The notes under the pieces are model-generated. The model was given only the letters and a program-made list of their open reading frames with translations. It had not been told where the DNA came from and made no database searches. A stretch of 64,000 nt of DNA from the sequence record MK250021.1, one strand, 5' to 3'. Below, piece after piece: positions 3,292 through 36,344 of this stretch (positions are counted from its first letter, which is position 1; each line of letters opens with the position of its first letter). Both the position numbers and the translations under genes were made by a program.

Positions 3292-3350
3292 TTGCTTGAT
3301 TTAAATGTTTTTATAATTATTATTTTATTTATCTAACTTTTTGTAAAAAA

Positions 3351-12707: not shown

Positions 12708-13103
12708 ATGACATATTTTCAAAATTTAGTTACAAACGAAATATTTGAATGGTTATTGAATAATAAATTTCCTGCTGTCATATGTTTTTATAATCATGGA
12801 AAGGAACAACTTTATTATACATTACCATATACAGATCCAAATTGGCAAAATTGCGATGCTTATTATAAACCAACATATTTTGATGTATTACATTGGTTAT
12901 TTAAAGAATATAATTTATATATCAATATAAATTCATATAATAATAAATTTTCAGTTCAAATTGAATATTTAACTAATCAGAAAAATAAGTATTTTGGTAA
13001 TTGCTGGGAAATTGGAGCGAATTGTAAAACTATTGAAGATTGTATTAAATCTGCAATAGAATATATTATTAAATGTGATATTTTAAATAAAATTAAATCA
13101 TGA
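12708..13103 (+). CDS. Hypothetical protein
   Basis: 131-aa ORF, operon packing. Confidence 0.75.
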   Translation: MTYFQNLVTNEIFEWLLNNKFPAVICFYNHGKEQLYYTLPYTDPNWQNCDAYYKPTYFDVLHWLFKEYNLYININSYNNKFSVQIEYLTNQKNKYFGNCWEIGANCKTIEDCIKSAIEYIIKCDILNKIKS

Positions 13104-13288
13104 AATATATTAGAAAAGGACATATAGTAATATGTGACAATTGCGGTGCACATGTTCTCATTGAAAGTAAAAAGAAAGATACTCATATGGACCATAATTG
13201 GAATCATACAAAGTATCTTCGTTATTTTACTTGTCCATGTTGTGGTGATGAAGTATATGCAGAATATCCTGAAGATGATCAAAATTAA
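13100..13288 (+). CDS. Small Zn-ribbon protein
   Basis: CDNC...CPCC; ATGA overlap with the previous gene. Confidence 0.7.
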   Translation: MKYIRKGHIVICDNCGAHVLIESKKKDTHMDHNWNHTKYLRYFTCPCCGDEVYAEYPEDDQN

Positions 13289-13827
13289 GTTAATGGTGAA
13301 AATAATTCTTTTTGCTCATTAATATATTTTTTAGCTTCTGGTAAATTATCAAATAATATATCATTCTCATCAGGTTGACAATATACCATATTACCATTAT
13401 CTTCTATTATATAGATTACACCAAATGGGTCTACCATCTGAGATGGTTCAATAGGTTTACTAAATATTATTTTCCTGATAGAATTATCAACGATAACATA
13501 ATATACATTTGCATTTGCGTCTATATTATCAGACCATTTACCTATGTAATTTATTTTATCATCATATGATGAAAGATTATTATCCATTATATTATCGCCA
13601 AAAAATGATGCAAGATAATTATTATTTTGATTTACCTTATCTTGATTATCTCTTATTAGAAATTCAGATGTTAAATTAATTGACGACTTATGATCATCTG
13701 GTATAAATATACCACCTATTACAATATCATCAAACTCATCTGAATCTTCTGTAGGATTTAACATCATATCACCTATATTTTTTAATTTTGGAATATATTT
13801 ATGTTGAAGTTTGTAAGTATATTTCAT
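13285..13827 (-). CDS. Hypothetical protein
   Basis: 180-aa ORF, convergent with the previous gene. Confidence 0.7.
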   Translation of the reverse strand: MKYTYKLQHKYIPKLKNIGDMMLNPTEDSDEFDDIVIGGIFIPDDHKSSINLTSEFLIRDNQDKVNQNNNYLASFFGDNIMDNNLSSYDDKINYIGKWSDNIDANANVYYVIVDNSIRKIIFSKPIEPSQMVDPFGVIYIIEDNGNMVYCQPDENDILFDNLPEAKKYINEQKELFSPLT

Positions 13828-13863
13828 TTAATTTTAATTAATAATCTTTAAATATTTATTATA

Positions 13864-14160
13864 ATGACAATAACATATACAGCGTTCGATGGTAAAATCT
13901 TCGATAATAAAGAAGATTGCGAAAATTATGAAGATAAATTGAAATTACTTAGTGGCACTTATGATATACTTGATAAAATATTAAATAAACTTTATGGATA
14001 TAAAGGTACTCTTTGGATTTGTGAAGAAAAAAATGAAATTGAACCACATTGTGGACAAGAATTACCAGGTCCAGGTGATATATTATGTACAATTAATAAT
14101 GAAGATTTAAATACATTATTTGTTATAAAGGGCTTACTTGAAAAATATAAAATTAAGTAA
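13864..14160 (+). CDS. Hypothetical phage protein
   Basis: 98 aa; N-terminal Y.AFDGK.F...EDCE.YE motif typical of small phage proteins. Confidence 0.7.
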   Translation: MTITYTAFDGKIFDNKEDCENYEDKLKLLSGTYDILDKILNKLYGYKGTLWICEEKNEIEPHCGQELPGPGDILCTINNEDLNTLFVIKGLLEKYKIK

Positions 14161-14162
14161 TA

Positions 14163-14705
14163 ATGAAAACAGCAAGGCAAGTTATAGATAAAATTAAAAA
14201 TCTATATATACAATGGTATAAAACGACATTATTTGATTCTACATCTCAAATGGGAATAAATGAACATAATGAATTAGTGGAGTATTCAAAACAACATGTT
14301 CATAATTTTAGTATAGCAATGATGGAATTACTTGAACATCCAGATGATATGAATTATCATATTCCTGTAATTTGTTGTTATATACTTCAAGAAGATTTTA
14401 TTAAATTATATGAAAATAAAAAAGATAAATTACCATTAGATGATGATTATCGTTGGGATGAATGTAATTTATGGTTAAATTATTTCAAATTAACAAAAAA
14501 TATTGATTATTATAAAAAGTTTAAAGAATATAAAAAATATATTACAGAGAACTTTAAACTATTTAATCCATTTACAGATAAAGATCCAAATATTACATAT
14601 GAAGAATATCTTAAGAAATGCGAAGATATTGATTCAGTAAATAAGTTTACAACTAAATTACGTAAAGATAATAATACAAAATTAGTATATGAATACAAGA
14701 AATGA
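14163..14705 (+). CDS. Hypothetical protein
   Basis: 180-aa ORF, operon packing. Confidence 0.75.
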   Translation: MKTARQVIDKIKNLYIQWYKTTLFDSTSQMGINEHNELVEYSKQHVHNFSIAMMELLEHPDDMNYHIPVICCYILQEDFIKLYENKKDKLPLDDDYRWDECNLWLNYFKLTKNIDYYKKFKEYKKYITENFKLFNPFTDKDPNITYEEYLKKCEDIDSVNKFTTKLRKDNNTKLVYEYKK

Positions 14706-15039
14706 ATTAAAAAAAATAATGAATGATTCTTTAAAACAAAATAATATCATTGATAAACAAGAGATACCAAATGTAACAATACTTCCAGATTTATCAGATC
14801 CATCAGAATATAAACGATGGTTTAATATGGGTCCTAAAGAAGCATTGGTAAATCTTCAAAAATATGTGGATTTGAACAAGAAAGATAATATTGATTTTAT
14901 TAAAGATTTCAATTATCTTTATACAAATGGTGGTATTTCTGGTTGGAGTAAAATACCATATAAAACATTCTATAACATTATTTATGGTAAACAAAGAGTA
15001 GATTTCAATGGTAATTTAACAGGTGATGAAAATAGTTAA
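14689..15039 (+). CDS. Hypothetical protein
   Basis: 116-aa ORF overlapping both neighbours by 17 nt. Confidence 0.7.
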   Translation: MNTRNELKKIMNDSLKQNNIIDKQEIPNVTILPDLSDPSEYKRWFNMGPKEALVNLQKYVDLNKKDNIDFIKDFNYLYTNGGISGWSKIPYKTFYNIIYGKQRVDFNGNLTGDENS

Positions 15040-15364
15040 ACATATTACTGAAGAACCTGAATATACTGCAGTTAAATTAATAACAACTGATTGTTTAGGA
15101 ATTATCCAATATAGTTTTAATGATAAAGATAATTATGTTTATATTTATAGTTTTTCAGTAGAGAACCATAATAGAGGTAAACATATAGGAACAGAATTAT
15201 TTGAATATTGTTTAAATGAAATAAATTCATTAGATAAGAAAGAGATTCATTTAACAGTTAATAAGAATAATATTCAATTAATTAATTTTTATAAACGATA
15301 TGGATTTATAGTAGTTAATGATAATTATGAAGAATATTATGTTTATATGAAGTTAAATCTCTAA
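15023..15364 (+). CDS. GNAT family acetyltransferase
   Basis: FSVENHNRGKHIGTELF (motif A) and VNKNN...FYKRYGF. Confidence 0.85.
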   Translation: MMKIVKHITEEPEYTAVKLITTDCLGIIQYSFNDKDNYVYIYSFSVENHNRGKHIGTELFEYCLNEINSLDKKEIHLTVNKNNIQLINFYKRYGFIVVNDNYEEYYVYMKLNL

Positions 15365-15560
15365 TTCATTTAATTATTTTTGAAATTAATTTAGATAAAT
15401 AATATAAGAAATATGTTTAAGAATTTGGCGATTGGTTTAAACTATTTTTATAATTTAGAATATAATATATAATTAAAGATATTTATAAATCGTTTATATT
15501 AATAATTTGTATCAATCGCCAATTTTTATACAAATTAAAATATAAACGATTTTTTATTAT

Positions 15561-16691
15561 ATGATAAAGTCTATTAAAATACGAATATATCCTGATACTG
15601 TTTAGAAAGAATTCATTTCTAAATAGTTAGGTTGTTGTCGATTTATATATAATAAATTATTGGATTATAAGAAAACTTAGTATGAACAAAATAAGCAACA
15701 GATTTCTTGGAAAGAGTTAGGTAAATATTTGACTAATCTAAAGAAACAAAAAAAATATTTATTTCTAAATGAAATATATAATGTATGTTTATAGCAATCT
15801 ATAATGGATATGATTAAAGCATATGATAATTTCTTTAAATTACATAAAGGTTATCCTAAATTCAAATCTAAAAAAGATACTAAGCAAAGTTGTAGATTTA
15901 CAAATCAAATATTTAAAAAATCTAATAAAATAAATGGTAATAGGATAACATTAATAAAGCAGTTAAAGAATATATTATTTAAATGCTCAAGAAAAGATGA
16001 GATATATTTAAATCATAATCAAGATAAAATTCATTCTGTTACTCTTATTAAAACATCTACAAACAAATATTATCTATCAATATGTATTGATTATGATATT
16101 GTTTAGAAAAAGGAATTAAATAGTGTAATAGGATTAGATTTAGGAATAAAAGATTTTATTGTTGATTCAAATGGTAATAGATATGAGAATAAACATTTTT
16201 ATAAGAGTCAAGAAAAGAAATTAAAAAAATTATAGAAGTAGTTAAGCAAGAAATAGAAAGGAAGTAATAATAGGAATAAAGTTAGAATTAAAATTGCAAA
16301 AGTTCATGAGAAGATAACAAATCAACGTAATGCGTATTTACATCAAATCACTTCAAAATTAGTTAATGAGAACCAAGTTATCTGTATTGAAGATTTAAAT
16401 GTAAATGGAATGATGTCTAATCATAAACTTGCTAAATCTATTCAAGAGTTATCTTTATTTGAATTTAGACGACAACTTGAATATAAATGTAAATTGTATG
16501 GTAGAGATTTAGTTATAATAGATAGATTCTATCCTTCATCTAAAACATGTCATAATTGCGGATATATTTATAAAAATTTAAAATTAAGTGAACGTGAATG
16601 GATATGTCCACAATGTGGTAAAGTTATAGATAGAGATTATAATGCTTCTTTAAATATTTTAGATGGTGGATTAAAACAAATAAATTTATAA
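15561..16691 (+). CDS. tnpB: RNA-guided endonuclease TnpB (IS200/IS605/IS1341 type), 376 aa, intact under code 15
   Basis: KSIKIRIYP, LGCCRFIYN, YPKFKSKK, GLDLGIKD, IEDLNV, SSKTCHNCG..WICPQCG..DRDYNASLNI; 8 in-frame TAGs at Gln-type positions (L*K*LSKK*KGSNN). Confidence 0.92.
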
Positions 16692-16699
16692 TCAATATA

Positions 16700-16830
16700 A
16701 TATATTAAATAGGGTTGAGTTTTACCGAATTTACGCTTGTGGAGATACCAACTATGGATGACTAAATTGCATTTTATGTAATTATACTAAAAAGTAGTGT
16801 GTCTATGAAACAAGAAACACAGGTTTTTAA
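16700..16830 (+). ncRNA. Putative TnpB omega-RNA scaffold / IS right end
   Basis: GC-richer GGGTTGAG..CCGAATTTACGCTTGTGGAG..CCAACTATGGATGAC..AAAAAGTAGT..TGAAACAAGAA directly after tnpB; ends are approximate. Confidence 0.6.
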
Positions 16831-16853
16831 AAATATAATTTAAAACTAAAACT

Positions 16854-17000
16854 ATGAACATTGAAAAAGCGTTAAGAAATTTAAAGAAAGTAAAAAATGA
16901 AATGGAAATAGAATGTTTATATAAAACTAATGTTGAATATAAAGCACGTCCATGGATGGAACTTATTGGTGATGCTATTTCTTTTCTTGATGGTGATTAA
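16854..17000 (+). CDS. Small hypothetical protein, 48 aa
   Basis: MNIEKALRNLKKVKNEMEIECLY... Confidence 0.55.
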   Translation: MNIEKALRNLKKVKNEMEIECLYKTNVEYKARPWMELIGDAISFLDGD

Positions 17001-17030
17001 AAATAATTAATAAAAATTAATAGAAATTAA

Positions 17031-17354
17031 ATGATAGATCCAAGTTATACATTATATCCGGAAGTTGCAGATGCTACAAATTTATATTTTCATGATGAGC
17101 CTTATGCTTATTGGGTTGAAAATATGAATTATAATTTTTGTAATTGGGTTTTATATAAAGAATATAATAATTATAGTTCTGTATGTAACCCTAATGATTG
17201 CATTGCAGGCATAAGCTATGAGGAAGTAATAGATGAGTTAAAAAATTCATGGTCATATAGAGATCAAGATAGAGAAATGTTAATTCGTACATTTAGACAA
17301 CGTTCATTAGGTGATACTGAATATAATTTTGAAGACTTTATAGATGAAGATTAA
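17031..17354 (+). CDS. Hypothetical protein
   Basis: 107-aa ORF. Confidence 0.75.
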   Translation: MIDPSYTLYPEVADATNLYFHDEPYAYWVENMNYNFCNWVLYKEYNNYSSVCNPNDCIAGISYEEVIDELKNSWSYRDQDREMLIRTFRQRSLGDTEYNFEDFIDED

Positions 17355-17381
17355 TTTAATTACAGTACATCCCTACTGGAA

Positions 17382-17447
17382 ATAAAAATAACGTGAAAAT
17401 TCTTAAGTTTTTCTTAAAAATTCTTAAGTTTTTCACGTTATTTTTAT
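17382..17447. terminator. Bidirectional terminator with an 18-nt direct repeat spanning the loop
   Basis: ATAAAAATAACGTGAAAA/TTTTCACGTTATTTTTAT arms; AAAATTCTTAAGTTTTTC occurs twice. Confidence 0.75.
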
Positions 17448-17462
17448 ATATTTTTATATGTT

Positions 17463-19379
17463 TTATGAATTGTTTACTATTTTCTCAACTTCTTCTCGCT
17501 TCTTATTTGAAACTATCCATCCAGGAGTCTTAACACCATTGATATTCAAGAATTTATTATATTTACAACCTATTTCTTTTAACTGATCTTTAATAGGTGC
17601 AATATCTTTATAATCTCCATATATAGCAATAGCTCTATCTGAATAATCATAAATATGAACATTACTATTATTAACTGGTTTTTCTTCAACAGGTTCTGAA
17701 GCAACTTTCTTTGGTCTTCCCCTACGTTTCTTTATTGCAGAATCAATAGAAGTTGTTTCATCATCTTTTACGACTCTTACTTTTTTCTTTTCTTCTTTTT
17801 GTTTTGCTTTAAGTTCTGCTTTTAATCGTTTAGCTTCTTCCTTTCGCTCTTCAATTATCTTTGCTCTACGTTCTTCTACCGGTTTAACAATAGTATCACG
17901 CATTGTAACAGTTCCACCTTTTTCCATCTTGAATGATGTATGGTCTAACCATTTACAAAATGCAGAATACGTCTTATATTCATCTTTAATACTTAATCTC
18001 TTCATAATAGTATAAGAGATAAATTTATCACCAAGAGATTTAATATATATAGTCCAATTATTTCCAAAATATGTTTGTTTTTCTTTAAGATATTTCAAAC
18101 AATTCTGTTTCATCAATTCATCATCCTCTGCTTTATCTGATGCTTTAAGATTAACCTTATCTATATTTGATTTATTTCTAATTAATTCATTTGAAGATGT
18201 TTCATTTGATGGTTCCACATATTCATGATGTGGTCCTTTCTTTTCATAATAGCAATCTAAAAACCAATCTTTAGATGTTAATATGGTTTTCCATTGTGGC
18301 TTAGTAGGTTTCCATCTTCTACAATTAGCTGCGAATTTATATGGTCCTAATTGAATCCATATACCAGCACCTTTACCAGGAAATCCACCAGCAACAAAAT
18401 CTAATTTAGGTAATATATCCATTGACAAGCCTTCAAATGACATATAAGGTAAAACTCTCCAAGGCCATATTTCGGTTCTAAACCATATTTTATCACATTT
18501 CGGTAAACCAACAAAATTTATTTTCTTACCTATATTATCTAATTCCTGATATGGTTCTTGCTTTGAACGCTCATCTCGTAACTCCATTTGAATATCATAA
18601 TTTCCATCGGGTAATCCTATAAAATTATATGTTTTTGGTAAACCTTGATATGTATAAGTATTATTTCTGAATGTATCATTTACTTTTTTTATAAATGAAT
18701 AATCATTCATATTAAAACATTCTTGTAATCCAATACCATCAGCGGATATAATCTCTACAGAATCATCTATCCAACATCTCAATAAGTCTACTGAAACTTT
18801 TGGTTTCGTGTTAGCATACCATGTATTTGAATTATATACAGTTTCAAATAATTTCTTTTCTTTTATTTTATCACCATCAATACGAAGGTTCTTTGGATAA
18901 ATTCCTTTTAATCCAATACTGTCAAAATTTATATTCTTTAAATCCAATACATTTGATTTAGCTTCATCTGATTTTGTATCACCAAATCTACCTATTTCTA
19001 CATTAAATCTCATCAAAACGTTATTAATGCTATATTCTTCTAATTCATCAATAAATTTTTGTGCGCATTCCAATGTATTAAATGAAACATATGTAAGATA
19101 ATATTTTGGATTGTCTTTTTCACTTGTATTATAATAAAATGCAACTGTATCATTATCAACGTCAGCATATACATGTTTATCATTTTCAACACATCTTGTA
19201 TATAAGCCTCGTCTTGCACTAAATGTTTGATCAGTTAAATATTGTTCAATCCATTTAAGCATATTTTTACTCATATTATTAAGCATGTTAGATGTTTCAT
19301 TATCATCTGTTGTACCTATTACATCATCAAAATCATCATCGAACAAACTTTCTACCAAACGTTTAATTCCTTTATTCAT
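17463..19379 (-). CDS. 638-aa protein with AT-hook (KRRGRPKK) and C-terminal YSDRAIAIYGD..GW domain
   Basis: Uninterrupted ORF with no TAG; charged helical linker, AT-hook and a small C-terminal domain. Confidence 0.8.
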   Translation of the reverse strand: MNKGIKRLVESLFDDDFDDVIGTTDDNETSNMLNNMSKNMLKWIEQYLTDQTFSARRGLYTRCVENDKHVYADVDNDTVAFYYNTSEKDNPKYYLTYVSFNTLECAQKFIDELEEYSINNVLMRFNVEIGRFGDTKSDEAKSNVLDLKNINFDSIGLKGIYPKNLRIDGDKIKEKKLFETVYNSNTWYANTKPKVSVDLLRCWIDDSVEIISADGIGLQECFNMNDYSFIKKVNDTFRNNTYTYQGLPKTYNFIGLPDGNYDIQMELRDERSKQEPYQELDNIGKKINFVGLPKCDKIWFRTEIWPWRVLPYMSFEGLSMDILPKLDFVAGGFPGKGAGIWIQLGPYKFAANCRRWKPTKPQWKTILTSKDWFLDCYYEKKGPHHEYVEPSNETSSNELIRNKSNIDKVNLKASDKAEDDELMKQNCLKYLKEKQTYFGNNWTIYIKSLGDKFISYTIMKRLSIKDEYKTYSAFCKWLDHTSFKMEKGGTVTMRDTIVKPVEERRAKIIEERKEEAKRLKAELKAKQKEEKKKVRVVKDDETTSIDSAIKKRRGRPKKVASEPVEEKPVNNSNVHIYDYSDRAIAIYGDYKDIAPIKDQLKEIGCKYNKFLNINGVKTPGWIVSNKKREEVEKIVNNS

Positions 19380-19441
19380 AATTTAAATTATAATTAAAAA
19401 TTCACATTTTATTATTTATTAAAAAAGGGTAACAATTAGTT

Positions 19442-20626
19442 TTATCTAACTGTACCCTTACCAAATGTTTTATTAATTTCTCGTTTAATATCTGTAATCG
19501 TATTCTTTATATAATCCTTATCATATTGTAAAATGTAATCTTTAAATCTACTTCCATTATACTTATATCCTTTAAGTTCATGAAATAGTTGCAAGACTTC
19601 ATTTAATATATATGTATAATTTTCATCATTATAACATTTCAATACATCATAAATCCTTTGTTTAATATCACTAAACTATTTCTTTAATATATAAAAATCA
19701 CCTTCTGTATTATGAATCATTCTATTAATACCTTTTGTAGTATAACCATTTGATATAAGTAATGCTCTATCAGTTAATGTATTATACTTATTATATGGTG
19801 ATCTGATTTTTAAATTTAAAACTGTATTGAAATTTGTATCTGATTTTTGTCCTAATTTCTTAAATGTTCCATCATTATTAAATTCGCAATCAATAGCTAT
19901 AGGTGCTGGCATTACATATGTTTTGAAATATTCAGCTTCACCTGTTTCTGCATTACAGAAATAAAAGAAAAATACAGTAGTAATATTTCTAAGATTTGTT
20001 TGACATTTATTTTCTTTTACTTCCAACTATCGCATATCATTAAGAATCTAATCAATACCTTTCATTGCATTGTTAACTTTACCTTTAAATGTATTATCAT
20101 CGAAGAAACTACATAAAACAGATTTAACCTCTATATATGTTTCATCTCCATTAGGCTAAGTTAACTTAATATCTGGACATTCATTTCTTCCATTTGGTTC
20201 ATGCTCAATTTTATATCCAATGTTTTCAGGAAATATACAGTGCATTATATGTTCAGAAGCAGAATGACATAAATTCATAAGTAACGAATCTGTATATACA
20301 ACCTTATTATCTTTGGACATAAACTATGTTAATGTTCCTCTGAAAGTTATCTTATTTGAATCTTTATTAGTAACAGTAAAAATAGGATCTTCTAAACCAA
20401 ATGTCATATAATTATCATCTGTATATTCATGAATATCATTATATAACATATAGAACTATCGTATATACTCATCATCTGTAGAGTATTCCAACCACTACTT
20501 AATACTGTCTTCCAAATCATTAGCGACAAAAATACTATCATCCAATGATGATAGAAACTATCGTCTTTCTTCAGGATTATTAATACATTTCAGAATACGC
20601 TACGGACTTTTTGATTTGTTACTCAT
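19442..20626 (-). CDS. PD-(D/E)XK restriction-endonuclease-like protein, 394 aa (code 15)
   Basis: ATG 20626, joins track ORFs 19676-20026 and 19442-19642; HEPNGRNECPDIKLT*PNGDETYIEVKS. Confidence 0.65.
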
Positions 20627-20673
20627 TTATAAATTTTGATTAATTTTATTATGATTATTATAAATCAAATCTT

Positions 20674-21030
20674 TTAAAAAGTTTTATTAAAATTAATCAA
20701 ATTCTCTGTTATATTAATATATGTTTCTCCTTTATGGATTGAATCGTTAAATCCATATTCATCTCTTAATTGTTTACCGAATTTATCTTGTAAATATAAT
20801 TTAACATTCAAATTCAATACATCGTCATTATCATCAGAAGTTAATACATATACTTCATTAAATTTCAATACAATAGGAATCTCTATATGGTCTTCTCCTA
20901 TAACTATATTAAATTTTGTTAACTAATATTTCTTTATATTATTCTTTATTCGTATAACAAAATTATTATTATAAGACTATTCTTTCTATGTATTATTTAG
21001 ACAATTTTTAAATAACGTAATCAAATTCAT
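20674..21030 (-). CDS. Hypothetical protein, 118 aa (code 15)
   Basis: ATG 21030, in frame with track ORF 20674-20868 through TAGs. Confidence 0.65.
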
Positions 21031-21063
21031 TTTTTAACTTAACTATCAATTTATAAAAAATAT

Positions 21064-22110
21064 TTATTTCTAATTAATTAAATAATTAATAATATGTTTA
21101 AAATATAGTTTATCTAATTTCTTAATTAAATATGATAATAGTTCATTATAATCTTTTACTTTTATTTTATACATATTATTAAATATCTTTAAATAATATT
21201 CATTAAACATACTTTTCTACTATTCAGATAAATCTAAACAGAAATTTAATCTCATATATAACCAATAATATTCATTATAAATCTCAGAATATTTACATAA
21301 ATCACTACGTTTATGTAATTCTATTTCATCTTCTATTTTATTAAACTATCCTATTGTATTTTCTATTCTTGCTTGAACTTCAGATTTATTTAGTAAATAT
21401 GCATTACTTATAAGATATTTAAATACATCTCCAACTAATACATGTTTCATCTAAAACTATTTCTGTGGATCTATATTATTATTTAATATTAATTTTTTAT
21501 TATTTGTATTTACTACCGAATCATATCTCTAACTATATAAAATATCTGAATTTAAATCAGCTTCTGATATTTTCGTTATATACATATCATATATATGTTT
21601 TAACTCATGTAATATAACATAATATATGTCAAAATTATTATCATTTAAATCAACACAATTAATATATATTGAAACATTATTAACTTTATCATTTTTTATT
21701 GTAAACGGACACGAATATACATTTATGTTATTTGTATCAATAACATAACTATTATACTTATTTCTTGATATTATACATGAATCATTCTAATTTTCAAATA
21801 TATCAGAAACATATATAGTAATATCATTAATCCATTTTGTACATTTACTTAAATCTATATAATAACGTTTAAAATATAATTCACCATCTAATCTTGTATC
21901 ATAATCTAATCCAGATTTTAAATCTTTTATTATTTCATCCGATACTTCCTTTATAATATTTTCATATTCTTTATTACCAAATTCTATTTTACCATATGAT
22001 TCTCTTAATACATATAAATCATGTAAAGATATATTTTTTATTTTCTATGGTGTAAATCTTTCACTTATTAACCCTAAATATATTTGTTTTGATGATTCTA
22101 TAAAATACAT
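21064..22110 (-). CDS. HExxH zincin-like protein, 348 aa (code 15)
   Basis: Missed by the track; VILHELKHIYD and YLLNKSEVQARIE; TAA at 21064-21066. Confidence 0.7.
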
Positions 22111-22155
22111 AATAATTTAAATAGTTTACTTATTTAAATAATTCACTTATTCTGT

Positions 22156-23511
22156 TCAAAAATATGAACAACATATATATGATTTGTGTGAAGTGAATCT
22201 AGAAAACTATAGATTAAACTAATCTATAGAAAGTCGATATTTAAGTTTCGACTTTTTGAAGAAGTAATATAGTTCAATTAAATCCTTATATGTAGGTTGT
22301 AACTTAAATTCTTCCAACGACTTAAGATACAACTTATTAAACATACTTAAACTAGGTCTCACTATATTCTTTTTAATATCTTTGGTTTTACTTATATATT
22401 GATTATAAAACTCATATCCTCTACGACCTATCTCTATTGACGCTAATACCATATCAGGTAAATTTAATGACCGATATAAGAAATTACCAATAAAACTTGA
22501 ATATTCAGGTTTAACCTTTAATAACTTTATATTGAAGATATTACAACGTTTAGTTAAATTATTAATTAACGTATTCCTACACCATGAATTATTCACCAAC
22601 TTATTATATCGCTTACCTTTATCTAAATCTTTTGATTTAATATTTAAATCTTCAATAGAAATAATCTGACATTTATAATATATTGCTTTATTAATTAAAT
22701 TCTTTACTATCTATATAGTCTCAAAATTCCTTTTATTACTTATATATTTTCTTTCATTAGATTCAGAACTATACCCTTTATTCTTTAAATTAAAATCTTT
22801 ATCATTTAACTTTTTAATAGAATAAATACCAGATTTAACTACATCAAATTCTGATTCTGATTTCCAATTAACAATACTCCATCCTATATAATTAGGATTC
22901 AAATCCAATGAGAGAACTCTATTCTTTATGAATTTAGTTTCATAATTATAAATATCAGTTTCTTCAAATATTATATAAATATAGTCTAAATCTAATTTAT
23001 ACGCAATCTTTATTTCTTTCCTTTCTTGTTTCTAATATAATTTAGATAGTATTTGTTTACGTTTATTTAGTCCTATAAGTTGTAAATTTATTTTAGTAGA
23101 TTTATTAGGTTTAAAAGTAATATTTTCTAAATCTTGTTCTATATGAAATTTCCTATTTGCCTTAATACCTTTATTAACCACTTCACCTATTGAATATATA
23201 GATGATAATCTTTTCTATTTAAACTATTTATTAGATATTTTACTTTTTAATCTATCAAAATAATTTTTCTTTCCACCAAATATTACCTTATCTTTCTTTG
23301 GTATATCATAAAAACTACATTGAATAAACCAACTATCTAATAAATCTACATTATTTAACTATTTAAGTTGCTATTTTATATCTTTCTATAATTTACCTTC
23401 CTATATTCTATTATATACAAAATGCTATACAGAACTATATTGTCTCATATAATCCTGTATAATATCTAATGACTAATCATCTGTTTGATATTTAATCTTC
23501 AATACTTGCAT
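22156..23511 (-). CDS. tnpB: TnpB-related RuvC nuclease lacking the Zn finger, 451 aa (code 15)
   Basis: VIFGGKK, RuvC-I SLDLNPNYIG, RuvC-II ISIEDL, VKPEYSSFIG, RuvC-III PDMVLASIEIGRRG; about 12 TAGs; TGA at 22156-22158. Confidence 0.8.
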
Positions 23512-23689
23512 TATTAATTGTATATAATATTATAACTTTTTATTATTTATCTATTTTATTTTTATAAAATACCTAATTTTATAAAATTTTTATGAAAGTT
23601 ATTTAAATATTATATTCTAAATTATAAGGTTATTCTTTATATGTCATGTCTTATTTAGTCATTTGCTAAATAATGTAATCAAATTCATT

Positions 23690-23726
23690 AAAAATGGGAT
23701 TATTACAAGCCATATGTAATAATCCC
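23690..23726 (-). terminator. Intrinsic terminator
   Basis: GGGATTATTACA-7nt-TGTAATAATCCC with a T tract on the minus strand. Confidence 0.85.
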
Positions 23727-23738
23727 AATATCTTTTAT

Positions 23739-24296
23739 TTAGTCTTCATAATTATTAACCATATAATTAAATACCTAATCAAATGTTGAGTCGATATTCC
23801 AAAAACTTTTTATATCATTTAAGTTTTCATTCGCTAATATCACAGTAGTATCATAAAATTGATTATCATATTCTTCTATATAATCTTTCATTTCATTACT
23901 TAATATACAAACAGTATTATTTGTTTGAAATTCTCTTGACATCTTCAAATCCTTATCATTATATTCTAAATCATAAGGGTATTCTTTATAAATGTCAATG
24001 GTAGGATTTATAGCTATCAAATTACCATCATAAAACGACTATAACCAGAAATACGCAGATGGTCCATCGGTTATTACACATGCGTAATTATCTATATATG
24101 CATATATAGTTTCCGAATCAATTTCCATCTATATATTATCAGGTACATAATTATATTGTTTCTAAATATTATCAAACAATTTAAAGACTATATCATAATT
24201 ATCACCATAACAAAGATTTATCTGTTCTCTCAACATATCATATTTCTTCTTTGTTTTATAATCATGATCCAGAATAATTAAGATTTTTTGTTTCAT
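23739..24296 (-). CDS. Hypothetical protein, 185 aa (code 15)
   Basis: ATG 24296 to TAA 23739-23741; translated through 4 TAGs. Confidence 0.75.
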
Positions 24297-24433
24297 AATT
24301 AAAAACTTCATTTAATTTTAACTATGTTCATTCGTTTATTCAAATTATTATTCATTAATCTTAATTATTGCTAAAATATATCCTATAATATTTATTAAAC
24401 TAAACAATTGTAAAAAATACACTAATATATTAT

Positions 24434-25324
24434 ATGAAAATAATAGATTTAACACAATATAAAAATTACTATTTCATTGGTGATCCACATGGAATAGATA
24501 TAATTTATAACATATTAAATTCATATATAAATGAAAATAATATGTTAGATAATTCTATTTTATTTTTCTGTGGTGACAATGGAATAGGATTTGATACTGC
24601 AGAAGAAACACATAAGAAATTAGAGTTATGTAATGAATTTGCGATAAAGCATAATCTCCATTTAATATTAGTTCGTGGTAATCATGATAATCCATACTTT
24701 TATAATGAATCAAATATATTAAATAAAAGTAATATTACATTAGTAGAAGATTATACTATAGTGAAAACATATGATAACAATGTATTATGTATAGGTGGTT
24801 CAATATCTGTTGACAGAACAAATAGGGCATTAAATAAAACATGGTGGAATAAAGAAGAAATAATTCCTATCAATGATGAAATAGAAAATGAATTAAGTAA
24901 TTTAAATTTCAATATTGATATTGTTTGTTCACATAATTGTCCGACTTATGAAAAACCTAAGAATATAGACAAATACAATCAAGGAGAAATAGTCGATAAT
25001 TGGTCCGTATGGGACTCAAAACTTTTAGATGATAACTTTATAGACCGTAGTAAAATGAACGCGATACACGAGGTTTTACAAGCTAAATTGAAGAATAATC
25101 TAAAGTATTGGATATACGGTCACTATCATAATCATTATGAATCTATAAGAACACATCCGAAATTCATTTGTCTTGATATGTATTATAAAAATATTGTTAT
25201 AGTAAAAAAAGTAACAACAAAAACATATAAAACAAATGGTTATTTTTATAAAGCAGGTCCTGATATTTTAGATATACATGATGAATCTAAATTCAGTAAT
25301 ATAAAATTTATAGAAACAAAATAA
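24434..25324 (+). CDS. Calcineurin-like metallophosphoesterase
   Basis: GDPHG, CGDNG, VRGNHD, SHNCP, YGHYH. Confidence 0.9.
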   Translation: MKIIDLTQYKNYYFIGDPHGIDIIYNILNSYINENNMLDNSILFFCGDNGIGFDTAEETHKKLELCNEFAIKHNLHLILVRGNHDNPYFYNESNILNKSNITLVEDYTIVKTYDNNVLCIGGSISVDRTNRALNKTWWNKEEIIPINDEIENELSNLNFNIDIVCSHNCPTYEKPKNIDKYNQGEIVDNWSVWDSKLLDDNFIDRSKMNAIHEVLQAKLKNNLKYWIYGHYHNHYESIRTHPKFICLDMYYKNIVIVKKVTTKTYKTNGYFYKAGPDILDIHDESKFSNIKFIETK

Positions 25325-25327
25325 ATT

Positions 25328-25675
25328 ATGAATATAATAATTTGGTTAATAGGATTTATACTATCATTGTTATTCAGTATATATTTTACATGGTTCAGTA
25401 ATAATTATATATATGAATATGATTATTGTATGAGAGGTTTATATGGAAATAAACAATATAAAATAAAATTACCAAGATACATTTATCTATTATATGGAAT
25501 AGGAATGTTTTTATATATAATCAATTTATTTATGGTATTTGGATGTATATTATTTTTCTGTATTGCAACAACAGATAATTGGACTAAATATCATTATATA
25601 GGAAAGAATAAATTTATATTAAAATATATAGATATAAAAAATAAAATAAAAATGTATCTTACATTAAAAGTATAA
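25328..25675 (+). CDS. Small membrane protein
   Basis: Two hydrophobic segments. Confidence 0.7.
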   Translation: MNIIIWLIGFILSLLFSIYFTWFSNNYIYEYDYCMRGLYGNKQYKIKLPRYIYLLYGIGMFLYIINLFMVFGCILFFCIATTDNWTKYHYIGKNKFILKYIDIKNKIKMYLTLKV

Positions 25676-25770
25676 TTTATATATAAAGTAAAATTAATTT
25701 ACATTTTTCGAAGACTTACCTTAGTAAATTACTAAATTCTTCAATAATATAAGATAAATTAATAATTAAA

Positions 25771-25873
25771 NNNNNNNNNNNNNNNNNNNNNNNNNNNNNN
25801 NNNNNNNNNNNNNNNNNNNNNNNNNNNNNNNNNNNNNNNNNNNNNNNNNNNNNNNNNNNNNNNNNNNNNNNNN
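25771..25873. other. Assembly gap (Ns)
   Basis: N run. Confidence 1.
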
Positions 25874-25920
25874 ATAAAAATTAAAAATAGTTTATAACTT
25901 ATTAATAATCAATAAAATAA

Positions 25921-25950
25921 AAGAGTGAATAATTTAAATTATTCACTCTT
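25921..25950 (-). terminator. Intrinsic terminator
   Basis: AAGAGTGAATAAT-TTAA-ATTATTCACTCTT perfect hairpin after the stop codon. Confidence 0.8.
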
Positions 25951-25962
25951 TCTTTATATTTT

Positions 25963-26850
25963 TTAAATCTATTCTACTTTACTTCCACAATATGGACAAA
26001 ACTTAAACTTTGTATTCAATTTTCTCCCACAATTAGTACAATAAACTTTATTCAAATCATTCACATTATAAGGTTTTCTACTCATAGGTAAAATCTTTAT
26101 ATACTCTGACTTATAAGGATAATTATCAAAATCGTTATAAACAGATTCGAACTTCTGATTTGAATAACTTCCTTTCTCTATTCTACCTGTTTCAAATAAT
26201 TTATTTATACTATCAGATGAAATTGATTTACTAAAAGATTTTATTGAACTTGCATTTAATGTTGATGCTGATGTTTCAATTCCACTTGTATTAATAGCAG
26301 TATCATTCAATGAAGTAGAACATAATCTTGTATCATTAATAATTTGATTTTTATCATCTATTATAGAACTTGTGTTATTAATACATGTTGTTTTATAAAC
26401 AAATGGTGAAATAGAAGGATTACTCAATGGATTATTTAATGGTTTACTAATAAGTGGTTCATTCAAATTATGATTTAACCAATAATTACCATCATCTATT
26501 AATTTATAGATTTTATCATTTCTTTCTCTATAGAACTTTACTGTAATATTACCATTATTTCTAATAGCATTTTTTACTTGTTCATTATTATCATCTACTT
26601 CATAAGTAGAAAACTTAAATTTCTTATTATCATTTAAGTAACGTTCCAACCAACATCTTTGTCCAGGTTTAAGAACCAGCATTCCATCTAACTTATTTTC
26701 ATTAATATAAATTTCTATACCAATATTATAAGTCTCTGGATTAAATAACATAATTTCAAATTCTGTGTTATCATTCATATAAACAACACGTGAATCTTCA
26801 TTAGTCTAATACTCTTTCAATAGAGATTTGTTGACAGCTATCTTTGCCAT
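25963..26850 (-). CDS. Conserved phage protein with C-terminal Zn ribbon (code 15; start uncertain)
   Basis: MAKIAVNKSLLKEY*TNEDSRVVYMNDNTEFEIMLFNP...CTNCG..CPYCG; the frame stays open upstream to the gap. Confidence 0.75.
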
Positions 26851-26996: not shown

Positions 26997-27425
26997 NNNN
27001 NNNNNNNNNNNNNNNNNNNNNNNNNNNNNNNNNNNNNNNNNNNNNNNNNNNNNNNNNNNNNNNNNNNNNNNNNNNNNNNNNNNNNNNNNNNNNNNNNNNN
27101 NNNNNNNNNNNNNNNNNNNNNNNNNNNNNNNNNNNNNNNNNNNNNNNNNNNNNNNNNNNNNNNNNNNNNNNNNNNNNNNNNNNNNNNNNNNNNNNNNNNN
27201 NNNNNNNNNNNNNNNNNNNNNNNNNNNNNNNNNNNNNNNNNNNNNNNNNNNNNNNNNNNNNNNNNNNNNNNNNNNNNNNNNNNNNNNNNNNNNNNNNNNN
27301 NNNNNNNNNNNNNNNNNNNNNNNNNNNNNNNNNNNNNNNNNNNNNNNNNNNNNNNNNNNNNNNNNNNNNNNNNNNNNNNNNNNNNNNNNNNNNNNNNNNN
27401 NNNNNNNNNNNNNNNNNNNNNNNNN
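26997..27425. other. Assembly gap (Ns)
   Basis: N run. Confidence 1.
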
Positions 27426-29603: not shown

Positions 29604-29666
29604 CTGTTAAATGATGTTAACTAAATAAACTTTTATCATTAATCATTTTCTTTTTTGAAAATAATG

Positions 29667-29677
29667 ATGTATCTTTG
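29667..29677 (+). promoter_or_regulatory. Bacteroidetes-type -7 promoter element
   Basis: ATGTATCTTTG ~30 nt upstream of the ligase-like gene, just after a terminator. Confidence 0.6.
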
Positions 29678-29707
29678 TATCGTTAAATTAAAATACATAG
29701 ATTATAT

Positions 29708-30822: not shown

Positions 30823-31758
30823 ATGGTAATCGCAATGCAAAATCAGTTTAGTGAGGATTATATGAACAATAATTACGGTATTGATTCAGTTGATGACAGA
30901 AAGAATTATGTTATCGACGACACAATGAATGTTGATGTAAATCTTGAAGCTTTAAAGCGTGAGGGAATTACAGAAGACGAAATTGACGAAATGTTTAATC
31001 TTGATGATGAAGCAATTAATAGTTCTATTAATGCTTTGGATTCTAAGAAGATTAATAAGTTAAAGAAACAAACATCAAAAGCAAAGAAGAAGCTTGAAGA
31101 TGATATTGTTCTTGTAAAGAAGTTTGTAGATAATCCTACACATGATAATTTCAATAAGTTGTGGGAGAGATTTTATTTCGGAGTAAAAGGACATGCATTT
31201 AAGTTTATGCATGACTGGGACCTTGCAGATGATATGACACTACAGACATTTACTCGTGCATGGGAGTTCCGTGATAAGTATGATATTGAGAAGGCAAAGT
31301 TCTCTACATGGTTGTATACAATTTGTCGTAACTTGTGTCTTGGAGAAATCAATAAAAGAAATAAGGAAAACATTGTTGGTAATGATATTTCTGATATGTT
31401 TGATTCTGCTATGTTGACTTCAAGTTCAGCAATGTCTACAAATTCTACACAGTATACAGTAGAGAATGGTGATTTAGTTGCGAATTCAGCAGATGATCTT
31501 GTATTGAAGATGTATGATACATCTCTTAATGAGATTGAGAAACTCGGCGGCACTTATGCAAAGGTTCTTCGTATGAAACTTGTTGATGACATGAAGATTA
31601 GAGAGATTGCAAATCAACTTAATATGAATGAATCAACAGTTAAGAATTATCTATATAAAGGAAAAGAAACACTTGAGTCTATTATGAAGACAAAGCATAA
31701 GGGACTTTATGAAATGTATCTTGAATCTGCAGGAGATGAAGCCGCAAAAATGATGTAA
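30823..31758 (+). CDS. ECF-type RNA polymerase sigma factor with N-terminal extension
   Basis: Region 2 ADDMTLQTFTRAWE..KFSTWLYTICRN; region 4 KIREIANQLNMNESTVKNYLYKGK. Confidence 0.88.
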   Translation: MVIAMQNQFSEDYMNNNYGIDSVDDRKNYVIDDTMNVDVNLEALKREGITEDEIDEMFNLDDEAINSSINALDSKKINKLKKQTSKAKKKLEDDIVLVKKFVDNPTHDNFNKLWERFYFGVKGHAFKFMHDWDLADDMTLQTFTRAWEFRDKYDIEKAKFSTWLYTICRNLCLGEINKRNKENIVGNDISDMFDSAMLTSSSAMSTNSTQYTVENGDLVANSADDLVLKMYDTSLNEIEKLGGTYAKVLRMKLVDDMKIREIANQLNMNESTVKNYLYKGKETLESIMKTKHKGLYEMYLESAGDEAAKMM

Positions 31759-34494: not shown

Positions 34495-35481
34495 ATGGAA
34501 AATACATCGACAAATACAAGTAATAATACTCAACATGTAACACAGAAATTGTTTACAGAAATGTTAAGACCACAAACATTGGATCAAGCTATTATAGTTC
34601 CGAGAATTAGAGAGGTTCTTCAACACGGGTTGACAACTAATATTTTACTTTCCGGTTCCGCGGGTGCTGGTAAAACTTCCCTAACTCGCATCTTAACTCG
34701 CGGATACCAAGTTCTTGAAATTAATGCATCTCTTGAAAATGGTATTGATACCATTAGAGATAAAGTTATTGCATTTGCATCTCAGTCATCTCTTTTTGAT
34801 GGTGAGGAAAAACTTAAGGTTGTTGTTCTTGAAGAGTGCGATGGTCTTTCTCTTGAAGCTTGGAAAGCTCTTCGTGCAACAATTGAAAAATATCATAAAA
34901 CTGTTAGGTTTATTGCAAACTGTAATTATATCGATAAGGTACCAGAACCTATTCAATCAAGATTTAATGTTATTATAATTGATCCGCTTACAAAAGAAGA
35001 AGAAGATTATCTATTTAACGGTTATCTTGAGAGAATTAAATATATTCTTACAAAATTTAGAATTCAATTTACAGAAGAAACAGTAACATCATTTGTAAGA
35101 AGTTCATTCCCTGATATGCGTTCACTTCTTAATAAGATCCAAAATCTTTATACAAGAGGATTAAAAGAATTATCAGTTGATATGCTTGCATCTTCTTATG
35201 ATTGTTCAGAGTTGTTTAAGCTTATAATTGATAAACCGGATCCTGTAAACAATTATAAGAAACTTGTTGCAGATTGGTCAACACGCTCAGATGATGCAGT
35301 TCTTGCAATAGGTAAGGATTTTCCTGATTTCATATTGACAACATGTCCACAATATGGTTCAAAACTTCCACTTATTCTTATAGCAACAGCAGAATATAAT
35401 TCTATGCTTGCAACATCAATAGATAAGTTTGTGACATTGCTTGGACTTGTATTTAAATTGCAGTTAATTATACATCAATAA
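34495..35481 (+). CDS. gp44: Sliding-clamp loader ATPase subunit (T4 gp44/RFC-like)
   Basis: LLSGSAGAGKTS, EINAS.ENGIDTIR, VVVLEECDGLS, RFIANCNY, PIQSRF. Confidence 0.9.
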   Translation: MENTSTNTSNNTQHVTQKLFTEMLRPQTLDQAIIVPRIREVLQHGLTTNILLSGSAGAGKTSLTRILTRGYQVLEINASLENGIDTIRDKVIAFASQSSLFDGEEKLKVVVLEECDGLSLEAWKALRATIEKYHKTVRFIANCNYIDKVPEPIQSRFNVIIIDPLTKEEEDYLFNGYLERIKYILTKFRIQFTEETVTSFVRSSFPDMRSLLNKIQNLYTRGLKELSVDMLASSYDCSELFKLIIDKPDPVNNYKKLVADWSTRSDDAVLAIGKDFPDFILTTCPQYGSKLPLILIATAEYNSMLATSIDKFVTLLGLVFKLQLIIHQ

Positions 35482-35557
35482 TTTTTAGAATATAAAATAA
35501 AAATGTATCTTTGTATTATTAGTTTTATATGAAGATACATTTTTAATTTATAAATAT

Positions 35558-36126: not shown

Positions 36127-36198
36127 GCATGATTAGCTAAGTGGTACAGCAGGAAACTTTAAACTTCCAGATCACGGGTTCGATCCCTGTATCATGCA
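36127..36198 (+). tRNA. tRNA with UUA anticodon (ochre suppressor-type); CCA not encoded
   Basis: Acceptor GCATGAT/ATCATGC + A73, D arm GCT/AGC with GG, anticodon arm GGAAA-CT TTA AA-CTTCC, T arm ACGGG-TTCGATC-CCTGT. Confidence 0.88.
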
Positions 36199-36344
36199 CA
36201 TCTAAATTTAAAATAAAAGTATAAAACTATGGAACTTCAACATTGGTAAGTTACATGTGATCGTGGACCTTAATTTTTGTATATTTTAATTTTATATATT
36301 AATCATAAAACTATTATTAAACAAAATTAAAACTATACAAAATT

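Follow-up and report, generated by a model that had tools for sequence, protein, structure and literature searches.

TnpB elements are the ancestors of Cas12, and both their expression and their survival where no transposase is present are under active study. Elements of the IS200/IS605 type which consist of tnpB only, together with a 3' guide RNA (omega RNA or reRNA), are RNA-guided homing nucleases (PMC8612924; PMC10055086). TnpB homologs can also be domesticated, as in the case of the TldR proteins, which are nuclease-dead TnpB repressors (10.1101/2023.11.30.569447). Here we describe two tnpB genes of the Prevotella phage Lak-B2 (MK250021.1, 549,839 bp), designated tnpB1 and tnpB2, which are preceded by an identical sequence of 21 nucleotides (nt), referred to as the 21-mer. 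Both genes lie in a stretch of 64,000 nt (the window), which is 100% identical to the phage record over 13000–26000 in a megablast comparison; positions refer to the window unless stated otherwise, the record position being the window position + 310,000. A literature search found no link between Lak phages and TnpB, and transposons are unmentioned in the Lak diversity paper. The Lak records are metagenome-assembled genomes, and the promoter assignments made below are based on sequence statistics alone.

In a first-pass annotation of the window, the 21-mer had been taken for a dedicated promoter or operator, or else for a common element end, and the two genes for co-regulated and domesticated nucleases. 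The reading which we favour, with moderate confidence, is that the 21-mer represents a piece of a phage-type promoter, native at tnpB1 and present as a Lak-B-specific 29-nt patch at tnpB2, and that both genes are selfish mobile elements. It is because of the exchange patches and the repeat pattern described below that the shared 21-mer is read as a promoter fragment moved by exchange; an exact shared sequence of this kind can be a promoter fragment spread by recombination and is not in itself a sign of a dedicated regulatory site. The data show how often the 21-mer occurs, the anatomy and class of the promoter, what paralogs keep or lack, the filled and empty alleles, the tnpA neighbours of relatives, the fold with its catalytic residues and the recombination patches; from these we infer the transcription starts, the responsible sigma factor, how and in which direction the patch was transferred, and homing.

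The first copy of the 21-mer is located at 15448–15468 (+), 92 nt before the ATG of tnpB1 at 15561, and the second, which is exact, at 23607–23627 (-), 95 nt before the ATG of tnpB2 at 23511. The identity at nearly equal distances had already been noticed in the first-pass annotation and holds, these two being the only exact copies in the full 549,839-bp record. The BLAST E-value of the 21-mer (tnpB2 leader against the genome) is 2.5e-5, and the identity between the two upstream regions stretches to 29 nt with 2 mismatches. Coincidence between two AT-rich leaders that both bear a TATAAT could be invoked here, as the GC content of the genome, like that of the window, is 20–30%, TATAAT-like strings are plentiful and exact matches of 13–17 nt to the tnpB2 leader are frequent across the genome. 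Such a coincidence is nevertheless highly improbable in view of the E-value of the exact 21-mer, the lack of a third exact copy within 550 kb and the fact that each copy faces a tnpB gene at an equal distance; moreover, 0.39 matches were expected from shuffled sequences at up to 3 mismatches, and 0 of 100 shuffles gave 3. The sharing of the 21-mer is beyond chance.

Two further candidate roles were tried and rejected. The whole 21-mer is not a general promoter of the phage, since only the 2 exact copies exist and, when up to 3 mismatches are allowed, the remaining matches in Lak-B2 are as many as those of a reversed-pattern control (7 against 7). For a 14-mer core with up to 2 mismatches, the count hardly exceeds that of shuffles (30 against 20). 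The second rejected candidate, a near-copy with 3 mismatches at 23956–23976 (-), had been considered as a third upstream element or the promoter of a small open reading frame (ORF). It lies within the coding sequence (CDS) of a gene for 190 amino acids (aa) at 23739–24311 (-), in a stretch which is conserved in Lak-A1 and aligns with it in frame, and it is for this reason not an upstream element.

At tnpB1, the 21-mer comprises the last 13 nt of a promoter spacer, the -10 element TATAAT (15461–15466) and 2 additional nt. The complete sigma-70-like promoter candidate extends over 15437–15466 (+), with a -35 element TTAAAC (15437–15442) and a spacer of 18 nt, and it shares the bipartite geometry TTAAAC-N18-TATAAT with sigma-70 promoters, a geometry that in Lak is read from the sequence alone. 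A search of Lak-B2 for [TG]T[AT][AG]AC-N18-TATAAT produced 30 matches, mostly just before genes, 23 of which are intergenic in a genome with only 12% intergenic DNA, while the reversed control of the TTAAAC-type pattern produced 7 matches and none in intergenic DNA. Two matches of this search located in masked parts of the window (25771–25873 and 26997–27425) were disregarded, and subsequent scans of the genome were made with these parts masked. It is plausible that the 21-mer is a native part of this candidate promoter. The tnpB1-type leader has a length of about 175 nt and is nearly invariant at four loci in Lak-A1, Lak-B2 and Lak-C1, and the 21-mer is retained, with its distance from the ATG unchanged, at B2_325k, B2_231k, A1_169k and A1_473k, the last being equivalent to C1_437k. 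Variants of the 21-mer within tnpB1-type leaders show one substitution, one substitution together with a change in the -10 element, or a deletion of 1 nt. The leader module and the 21-mer are both absent at the tnpB1-family loci B2_92k, B2_218k, B4_515k, C1_210k and C1_256k, so that about half of the tnpB1-type loci are without the 21-mer.

The situation at tnpB2 is a different one. Here the 21-mer is found only at this one syntenic locus in Lak-B-type genomes, including a second Lak-B-like genome, and it is absent from the other eight tnpB2-type leaders (in Lak-A1 and Lak-C1) as well as from the contig with an autonomous IS607 element. What is conserved before most tnpB2-type genes is another motif, TAGATAAATAA, exact or with 1–2 changes, which at tnpB2 is located at 23543–23553 (-), 31 nt before the ATG. 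In addition, the tnpB2 copy of the 21-mer has no -35 box at the matching distance, the sequence at this position being AAAGAA or AAGAAT. The proposal that the 21-mer serves as a promoter is plausible for tnpB1, where both the promoter anatomy and the enrichment of this class speak for it, but doubtful for tnpB2.

The leader of tnpB2 is a mosaic. It contains a segment of 44 nt at 23646–23689 (-) which is 86% identical to 20988–21031, the 5' end of the gene 21030–20674, furthermore 33 nt with 94% identity to part of the adjacent gene for 190 aa, in the region of the near-copy at 23956–23976, the 21–29 nt common to the tnpB1 promoter and then the generic TAGATAAATAA block. This leader occupies the place which in related IS607-type elements is held by a serine-recombinase tnpA. 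Most likely, the patch at tnpB2 would have been brought in by short-patch recombination or copy-choice inside the phage genome. An element end shared by both genes, as suggested in the first-pass annotation, does not agree with the position of the 21-mer, which is set back from the end by 60–80 nt in the tnpB2 indel and by about 55 nt in the leader module of tnpB1.

This indel is defined by Lak-B4, which is 99.6% identical over the region and lacks exactly the tnpB2 gene and its 175-nt leader including the 21-mer. The unit missing there comprises 1543 bp (22144–23686, -), with a junction that is ambiguous over 3 nt (AAT microhomology), and it is present in the other eight Lak-B genomes. Lak-A1 lacks the block 21053–23735 with tnpB2 and the block 15033–16835 with tnpB1. 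Between 0 and 5 tnpB2-type copies are found per genome, with 3 in Lak-A1 and 5 in Lak-C1, two of the latter being clean insertions relative to Lak-A1. Two TnpB lineages have settled in a recoded megaphage and are still gained and lost between near-identical genomes, and because of this gain and loss the phages provide natural filled and empty alleles for testing RNA-guided homing. The locus illustrates well, in a natural setting, how TnpB elements live in a recoded megaphage.

The empty site of Lak-B4 reads TATAAATAAG where Lak-B2 has TATTTAAATAAG (22130–22143), with a deletion of 2 nt located 2–4 nt from the junction. This deletion falls at the end of the presumed guide target which is proximal to the target-adjacent motif (TAM), and it is compatible with either a cleavage-resistant allele or a repair scar. 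The tnpB2 block missing from Lak-A1 also contains an ORF of 348 aa and unknown function (21064–22110), which is retained in Lak-B4, and the tnpB1 block absent from Lak-A1 also contains an acetyltransferase-like ORF of 113 aa (15023–15364).

Direct repeats of target DNA, 3, 7, about 22 or 73 nt long, border the TnpB insertions of Lak phages, and in many cases they are duplicates of the 5' end of the gene that follows; the flanking repeat pairs in the window are 15012–15032 and 16836–16856, and 20988–21031 and 23646–23689. Target repeats of such variable length seem easier to explain by copy-choice or recombination than by the action of a Y1 or serine transposase. Exchange is also indicated by a comparison of Lak-B2 with the second Lak-B-like genome, which revealed 61 mismatches over 4.36 kb, 50 of them within 450 nt of tnpB2 (22912–23361) and the remaining 11 in a second patch at 21262–21561. 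The 450-nt cluster is, judged by this distribution, a gene-conversion patch, and it is from the clustering of the differences that short-patch exchange can be said to occur at this locus.

One may go further and regard the region of the 21-mer itself as a hot spot or joint of recombination in the shuffling of TnpB cassettes, i.e. as a scar of mobility without regulatory meaning. The best partner of the tnpB2 leader indeed switches within the 21-mer, from the neighbouring CDS on the left to the tnpB1 leader on the right, conversion patches exist at the tnpB2 locus and target repeats of 3, 7, about 22 and 73 nt are not expected from any TnpA. We consider a hot spot unlikely, as a single chimeric joint has been observed and the 21-mer in tnpB1-type copies is placed centrally in a module that is invariant otherwise, where it marks no boundary.

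Several observations do not sit easily with the promoter fragment that we favour. The tnpB1 copy of Lak-B is alone in having TTTAGAAT, where its paralogs have TTTTGAAT or TTTGAAT, and for this reason a conversion in the direction from tnpB2 to tnpB1 may be conceivable. As its -35 box is unrecognisable, the 21-mer may not act as a promoter at tnpB2 at all. The tnpB1 promoter, the tnpB2 leader and the neighbouring CDS resemble one another more than expected by simple chance, and a single recombination event does not account for all of this resemblance. Finally, the exact 21 nt could be under selection for some purpose that is not apparent from these data.

A last alternative for the tnpB2 leader is derived from an 11-nt sequence, TATTTAAATAA, at 23600–23610 (-), which covers the last 3 nt of the 21-mer and 8 nt beyond. 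It is identical to the 11 nt that immediately adjoin the right end of tnpB2, which is the position expected of the guide, so that the 21-mer or its flank could be a binding site of the complex of TnpB and guide RNA, allowing autoregulation through a partial guide match. This 11-mer is so rich in AT that it is expected dozens of times per genome, and the match may be due to chance; tnpB1 carries another sequence at this place, and a shared TAM is doubtful because the bases upstream differ from those at the true junction. A role of the 21-mer in guide binding is therefore hardly probable.

The tnpB1 gene (15561–16691, +) encodes an IS200/IS605-type TnpB of 376 aa and, with 8 in-frame TAG codons, is open only if TAG is read as glutamine (Q). 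The protein matches the NCBIfam family of RNA-guided TnpB, NF040570, with 352 bits (cut-off 100) and phrog_506 with E = 2e-125; with NF038281 it reaches 384 bits, which is under the strict cut-off of 425. The D-E-D motifs of RuvC (GLDLG, CIEDLN, DRDYNAS) and a zinc ribbon (CHNCG and CPQCG) can be read from the sequence. Lak-B2 contains 4 intact tnpB1-type copies and the copy number is 4–5 per genome, with a fifth member of the family being found in Lak-B4 and absent from Lak-B2. With NF033573, no Y1 tnpA above the cut-off was found in four Lak genomes including Lak-B2, while control genomes were detected.

Downstream of tnpB1, a non-coding region at 16692–16823 (+) is conserved across the tnpB1-type copies and resembles an omega RNA scaffold plus right end. 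About 130 nt past the stop codon, with a variable hairpin among them, are kept in 6 copies, and about 35 further nt are similar in 3 copies. An Rfam scan of the window from 14000 to 25000 (E up to 1) gave no family, and hence no known omega RNA, RAGATH or IS605-orfB motif. With its RuvC motifs, two CxxC pairs, a conserved 3' region of about 130 nt, multiple copies and no adjacent tnpA, tnpB1 is similar to the described IS200/IS605 elements with tnpB only. It differs from them in several respects: the Lak copies reside in a recoded phage of 550 kb and contain 8–17 in-frame TAG codons, their leader of about 175 nt contains a covarying long-range stem in addition to two promoter motifs of the phage type, and their insertions are bordered by long target repeats of variable length.

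The second gene, tnpB2 (22156–23511, -), encodes a protein of 451 aa with a Cas12f/TnpB fold and no zinc ribbon, and has 12 in-frame TAG codons (again open only with TAG as Q). No significant match was found in PHROGs or NCBIfam, a single-sequence search of the PDB was empty and the Pfam annotation is empty for the tnpB2 homologs among the matches listed. A profile search with the tnpB2 family gave weak matches to Cas12f and TnpB. The AlphaFold model, with a pLDDT (predicted local distance difference test) of 91.3, has as its top Foldseek matches Cas12f, Cas12k, the TnpB proteins of ISDra2 and ISFba1 and Fanzor2, with E-values down to 1e-7. An alignment of 37 diverse relatives showed that the RuvC triad, D203, E287 and D353, is invariant; as to the zinc ribbon (OrfB_Zn_ribbon), tnpB2 has no CxxC pairs and the 37 relatives have no invariant Cys. 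In BLASTP, tnpB1 and tnpB2 share a single match of 35 residues around the RuvC glutamate, which amounts to a remote kinship. The earlier statement that the two belong to different lineages is thereby supported, one being of the IS200/IS605 type and the other zinc-finger-less and associated with IS607.

This association is based on close relatives. A tnpB2-type copy of 85% identity is preceded at a distance of about 90 nt by an IS607 tnpA (NF033518, 156–157 bits) in both Lak-A1 and Lak-C1, one each, and a relative of 94% identity on a 2.2-kb metagenome contig has a PF00239 resolvase gene 50 nt upstream. No serine-recombinase tnpA was found in Lak-B2, so that the claimed lack of a tnpA, whether Y1 or serine, proved correct for this genome, even though relatives do carry an IS607 tnpA. 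Judged by this neighbourhood, tnpB2 is the TnpB of an IS607-family element, and the Lak-B copy has lost its tnpA.

The last 150 nt or so of the tnpB2-type genes are conserved, with stem-loops that bear compensatory changes, and the flanks then diverge. Conservation of the 3' end followed by divergence of the flanks, which is seen in both tnpB types, resembles what is expected of guide-RNA scaffolds. Like IS607 elements, tnpB2-type genes in Lak-A1 and Lak-C1 are located directly downstream of tnpA and have the TnpB/Cas12f fold. Unlike the IS607 reference, the whole protein family lacks the zinc ribbon and matched no Pfam or PHROG family, there is no RAGATH-18-type or other Rfam RNA at tnpB2, and the Lak-B gene is without tnpA and has gained a mosaic leader. 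With 1026 clusters at 50% identity, the zinc-finger-less IS607-type TnpB proteins constitute a large unnamed family of compact (about 450 aa) candidate nucleases.

Against this background, the co-regulation of two domesticated TnpBs in the service of the phage by a dedicated shared promoter or operator can be judged. It is an attractive idea in so far as the exact 21-mer, at near-equal distances, precedes these two genes only in the whole genome, no tnpA was found in Lak-B2 and both genes are written in the TAG = Q code of the phage. It also resembles the situation of TldR, where a tnpB homolog without tnpA is located beside a conserved upstream DNA motif. In contrast to TldR, however, the catalytic residues are retained in Lak, the loci occur in several copies and are polymorphic, and conservation of the motif across orthologs is lacking: the 21-mer is absent upstream of orthologous tnpB genes, namely from all other tnpB2-type leaders and from five tnpB1-family loci. 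In addition, Lak-B4, although 99.6% identical, has no tnpB2, and IS607 tnpA genes are found beside close relatives. We thus regard co-regulation by a dedicated site as very unlikely, and the domestication proposed in the first-pass annotation is contradicted by the presence/absence polymorphism, the multiple copies, the tnpA of the relatives, the intact RuvC triad and the 3' ends resembling guide RNAs. By these features, both tnpB genes are, in our interpretation, selfish and recently mobile RNA-guided nuclease elements. They have taken on the TAG = Gln code and the promoter motifs of the phage, and probably persist through guide-RNA-directed cutting of empty sites followed by recombination.

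The tnpB1 promoter is bracketed by an inverted repeat of 10–12 nt, whose left arm L1 (15425–15434, +) and right arm R1 (15513–15522, +) form a GC-rich long-range stem. Four versions of the arms exist, all of them perfectly complementary, in leaders that are otherwise about 92% identical. In this stem, 5 of the 11 pairs are changed on both sides and none on one side only, and slid controls lack such changes. Scans of IMG/VR and of metagenomes recovered the same four versions and no additional ones, and no other copies of the full arms, sought as guide or target, were found in the genome. Covariation in four sequences is suggestive and not a proof, and the structure may also act at the DNA level. 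An invertible promoter (inverton) was considered and is unlikely, with arms 78 bp apart and the same orientation in all copies.

The right arm overlaps a second structure, a leader hairpin of 24 bp (15487–15560, +) in which 15487–15512 pairs with 15528–15552, followed by a U-run up to the ATG. In a ribonucleic acid (RNA) molecule that begins after the 21-mer promoter, this hairpin has a minimum free energy of -20 kcal/mol (z = -4.0) and R1 forms its apical loop, the transcript being without L1. Its pairing holds in 100% of cells, though the sequence is nearly invariant. In a longer RNA including L1 (z = -3.5), L1 is predicted to pair with R1 and the 3' half of the hairpin to stay unpaired. The predicted architecture of the leader suggests an attenuation that depends on the promoter used.

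Tentatively, and with rather low confidence, the tnpB1-type leader could thus be a riboregulator which depends on the promoter that fires and has a copy-specific address. Transcripts from the 21-mer promoter, lacking L1, would fold the hairpin with its U-run and end or be blocked before the ATG, and the short RNA would display the variable R1 in its loop. Transcripts from a distal TAGATAAATAA motif would include L1, whose pairing with R1 would open the hairpin so that tnpB1 is expressed. If this were true, the four compensated versions of L1 and R1 would keep the control circuit private to each copy of the insertion sequence. We know of no such riboregulatory device in TnpB elements, and the covarying leader stem makes it a testable one.

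The distal motif just mentioned, located at 15392–15402 (+), lies at the 5' edge of the tnpB1-type leader module and does not vary among the four versions of the leader. In Lak-B2, TAGATAAATAA has 12 exact copies, all of them in intergenic DNA, and variants with one mismatch are typically located 18–33 nt before start codons, with one copy preceding a tRNA. These data make TAGATAAATAA a candidate promoter of Lak, which we take to resemble the late promoter of phage T4, TATAAATA. TA[G/T]ATAAATAA, a putative promoter class comparable to the latter, is found in Lak 18–33 nt before many start codons. A further copy of TAGATAAATAA in the window is located at 3325–3335 (-).

A Prevotella host is expected to use promoters with TTTG or TAnnTTTG, and it is for this reason that sigma factors of the phage are presumed to read the Lak promoters. 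An ORF of the sigma-70 family (model for extracytoplasmic function, ECF) is found at 31150–31680 (+), and a second one, also identified with an ECF model, at record positions 199493–200200 (-); both are without TAG codons. A sigma-70-family ORF of this kind is presumably a candidate reader of the TATAAT-type promoters. Together, the two promoter motifs offer a first handle on the transcription of Lak phages. The phage may use host-type promoters as well. An intergenic block which is repeated at 29637–29694 and 35473–35530 (+) contains TATCTTTG, which presumably fits the TAnnTTTG promoter element of the Bacteroidota.

As to the genetic code, many ORFs of the window are open only if TAG encodes an amino acid, while neighbouring ORFs are without any TAG, a mixed pattern known from the description of Lak phages with alternative coding (PMC8346664). 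A tRNA with the anticodon UUA, which reads UAA, was detected by ARAGORN at 36127–36199 (+), yet the codon that is read through is TAG, and TAA seems to end genes.

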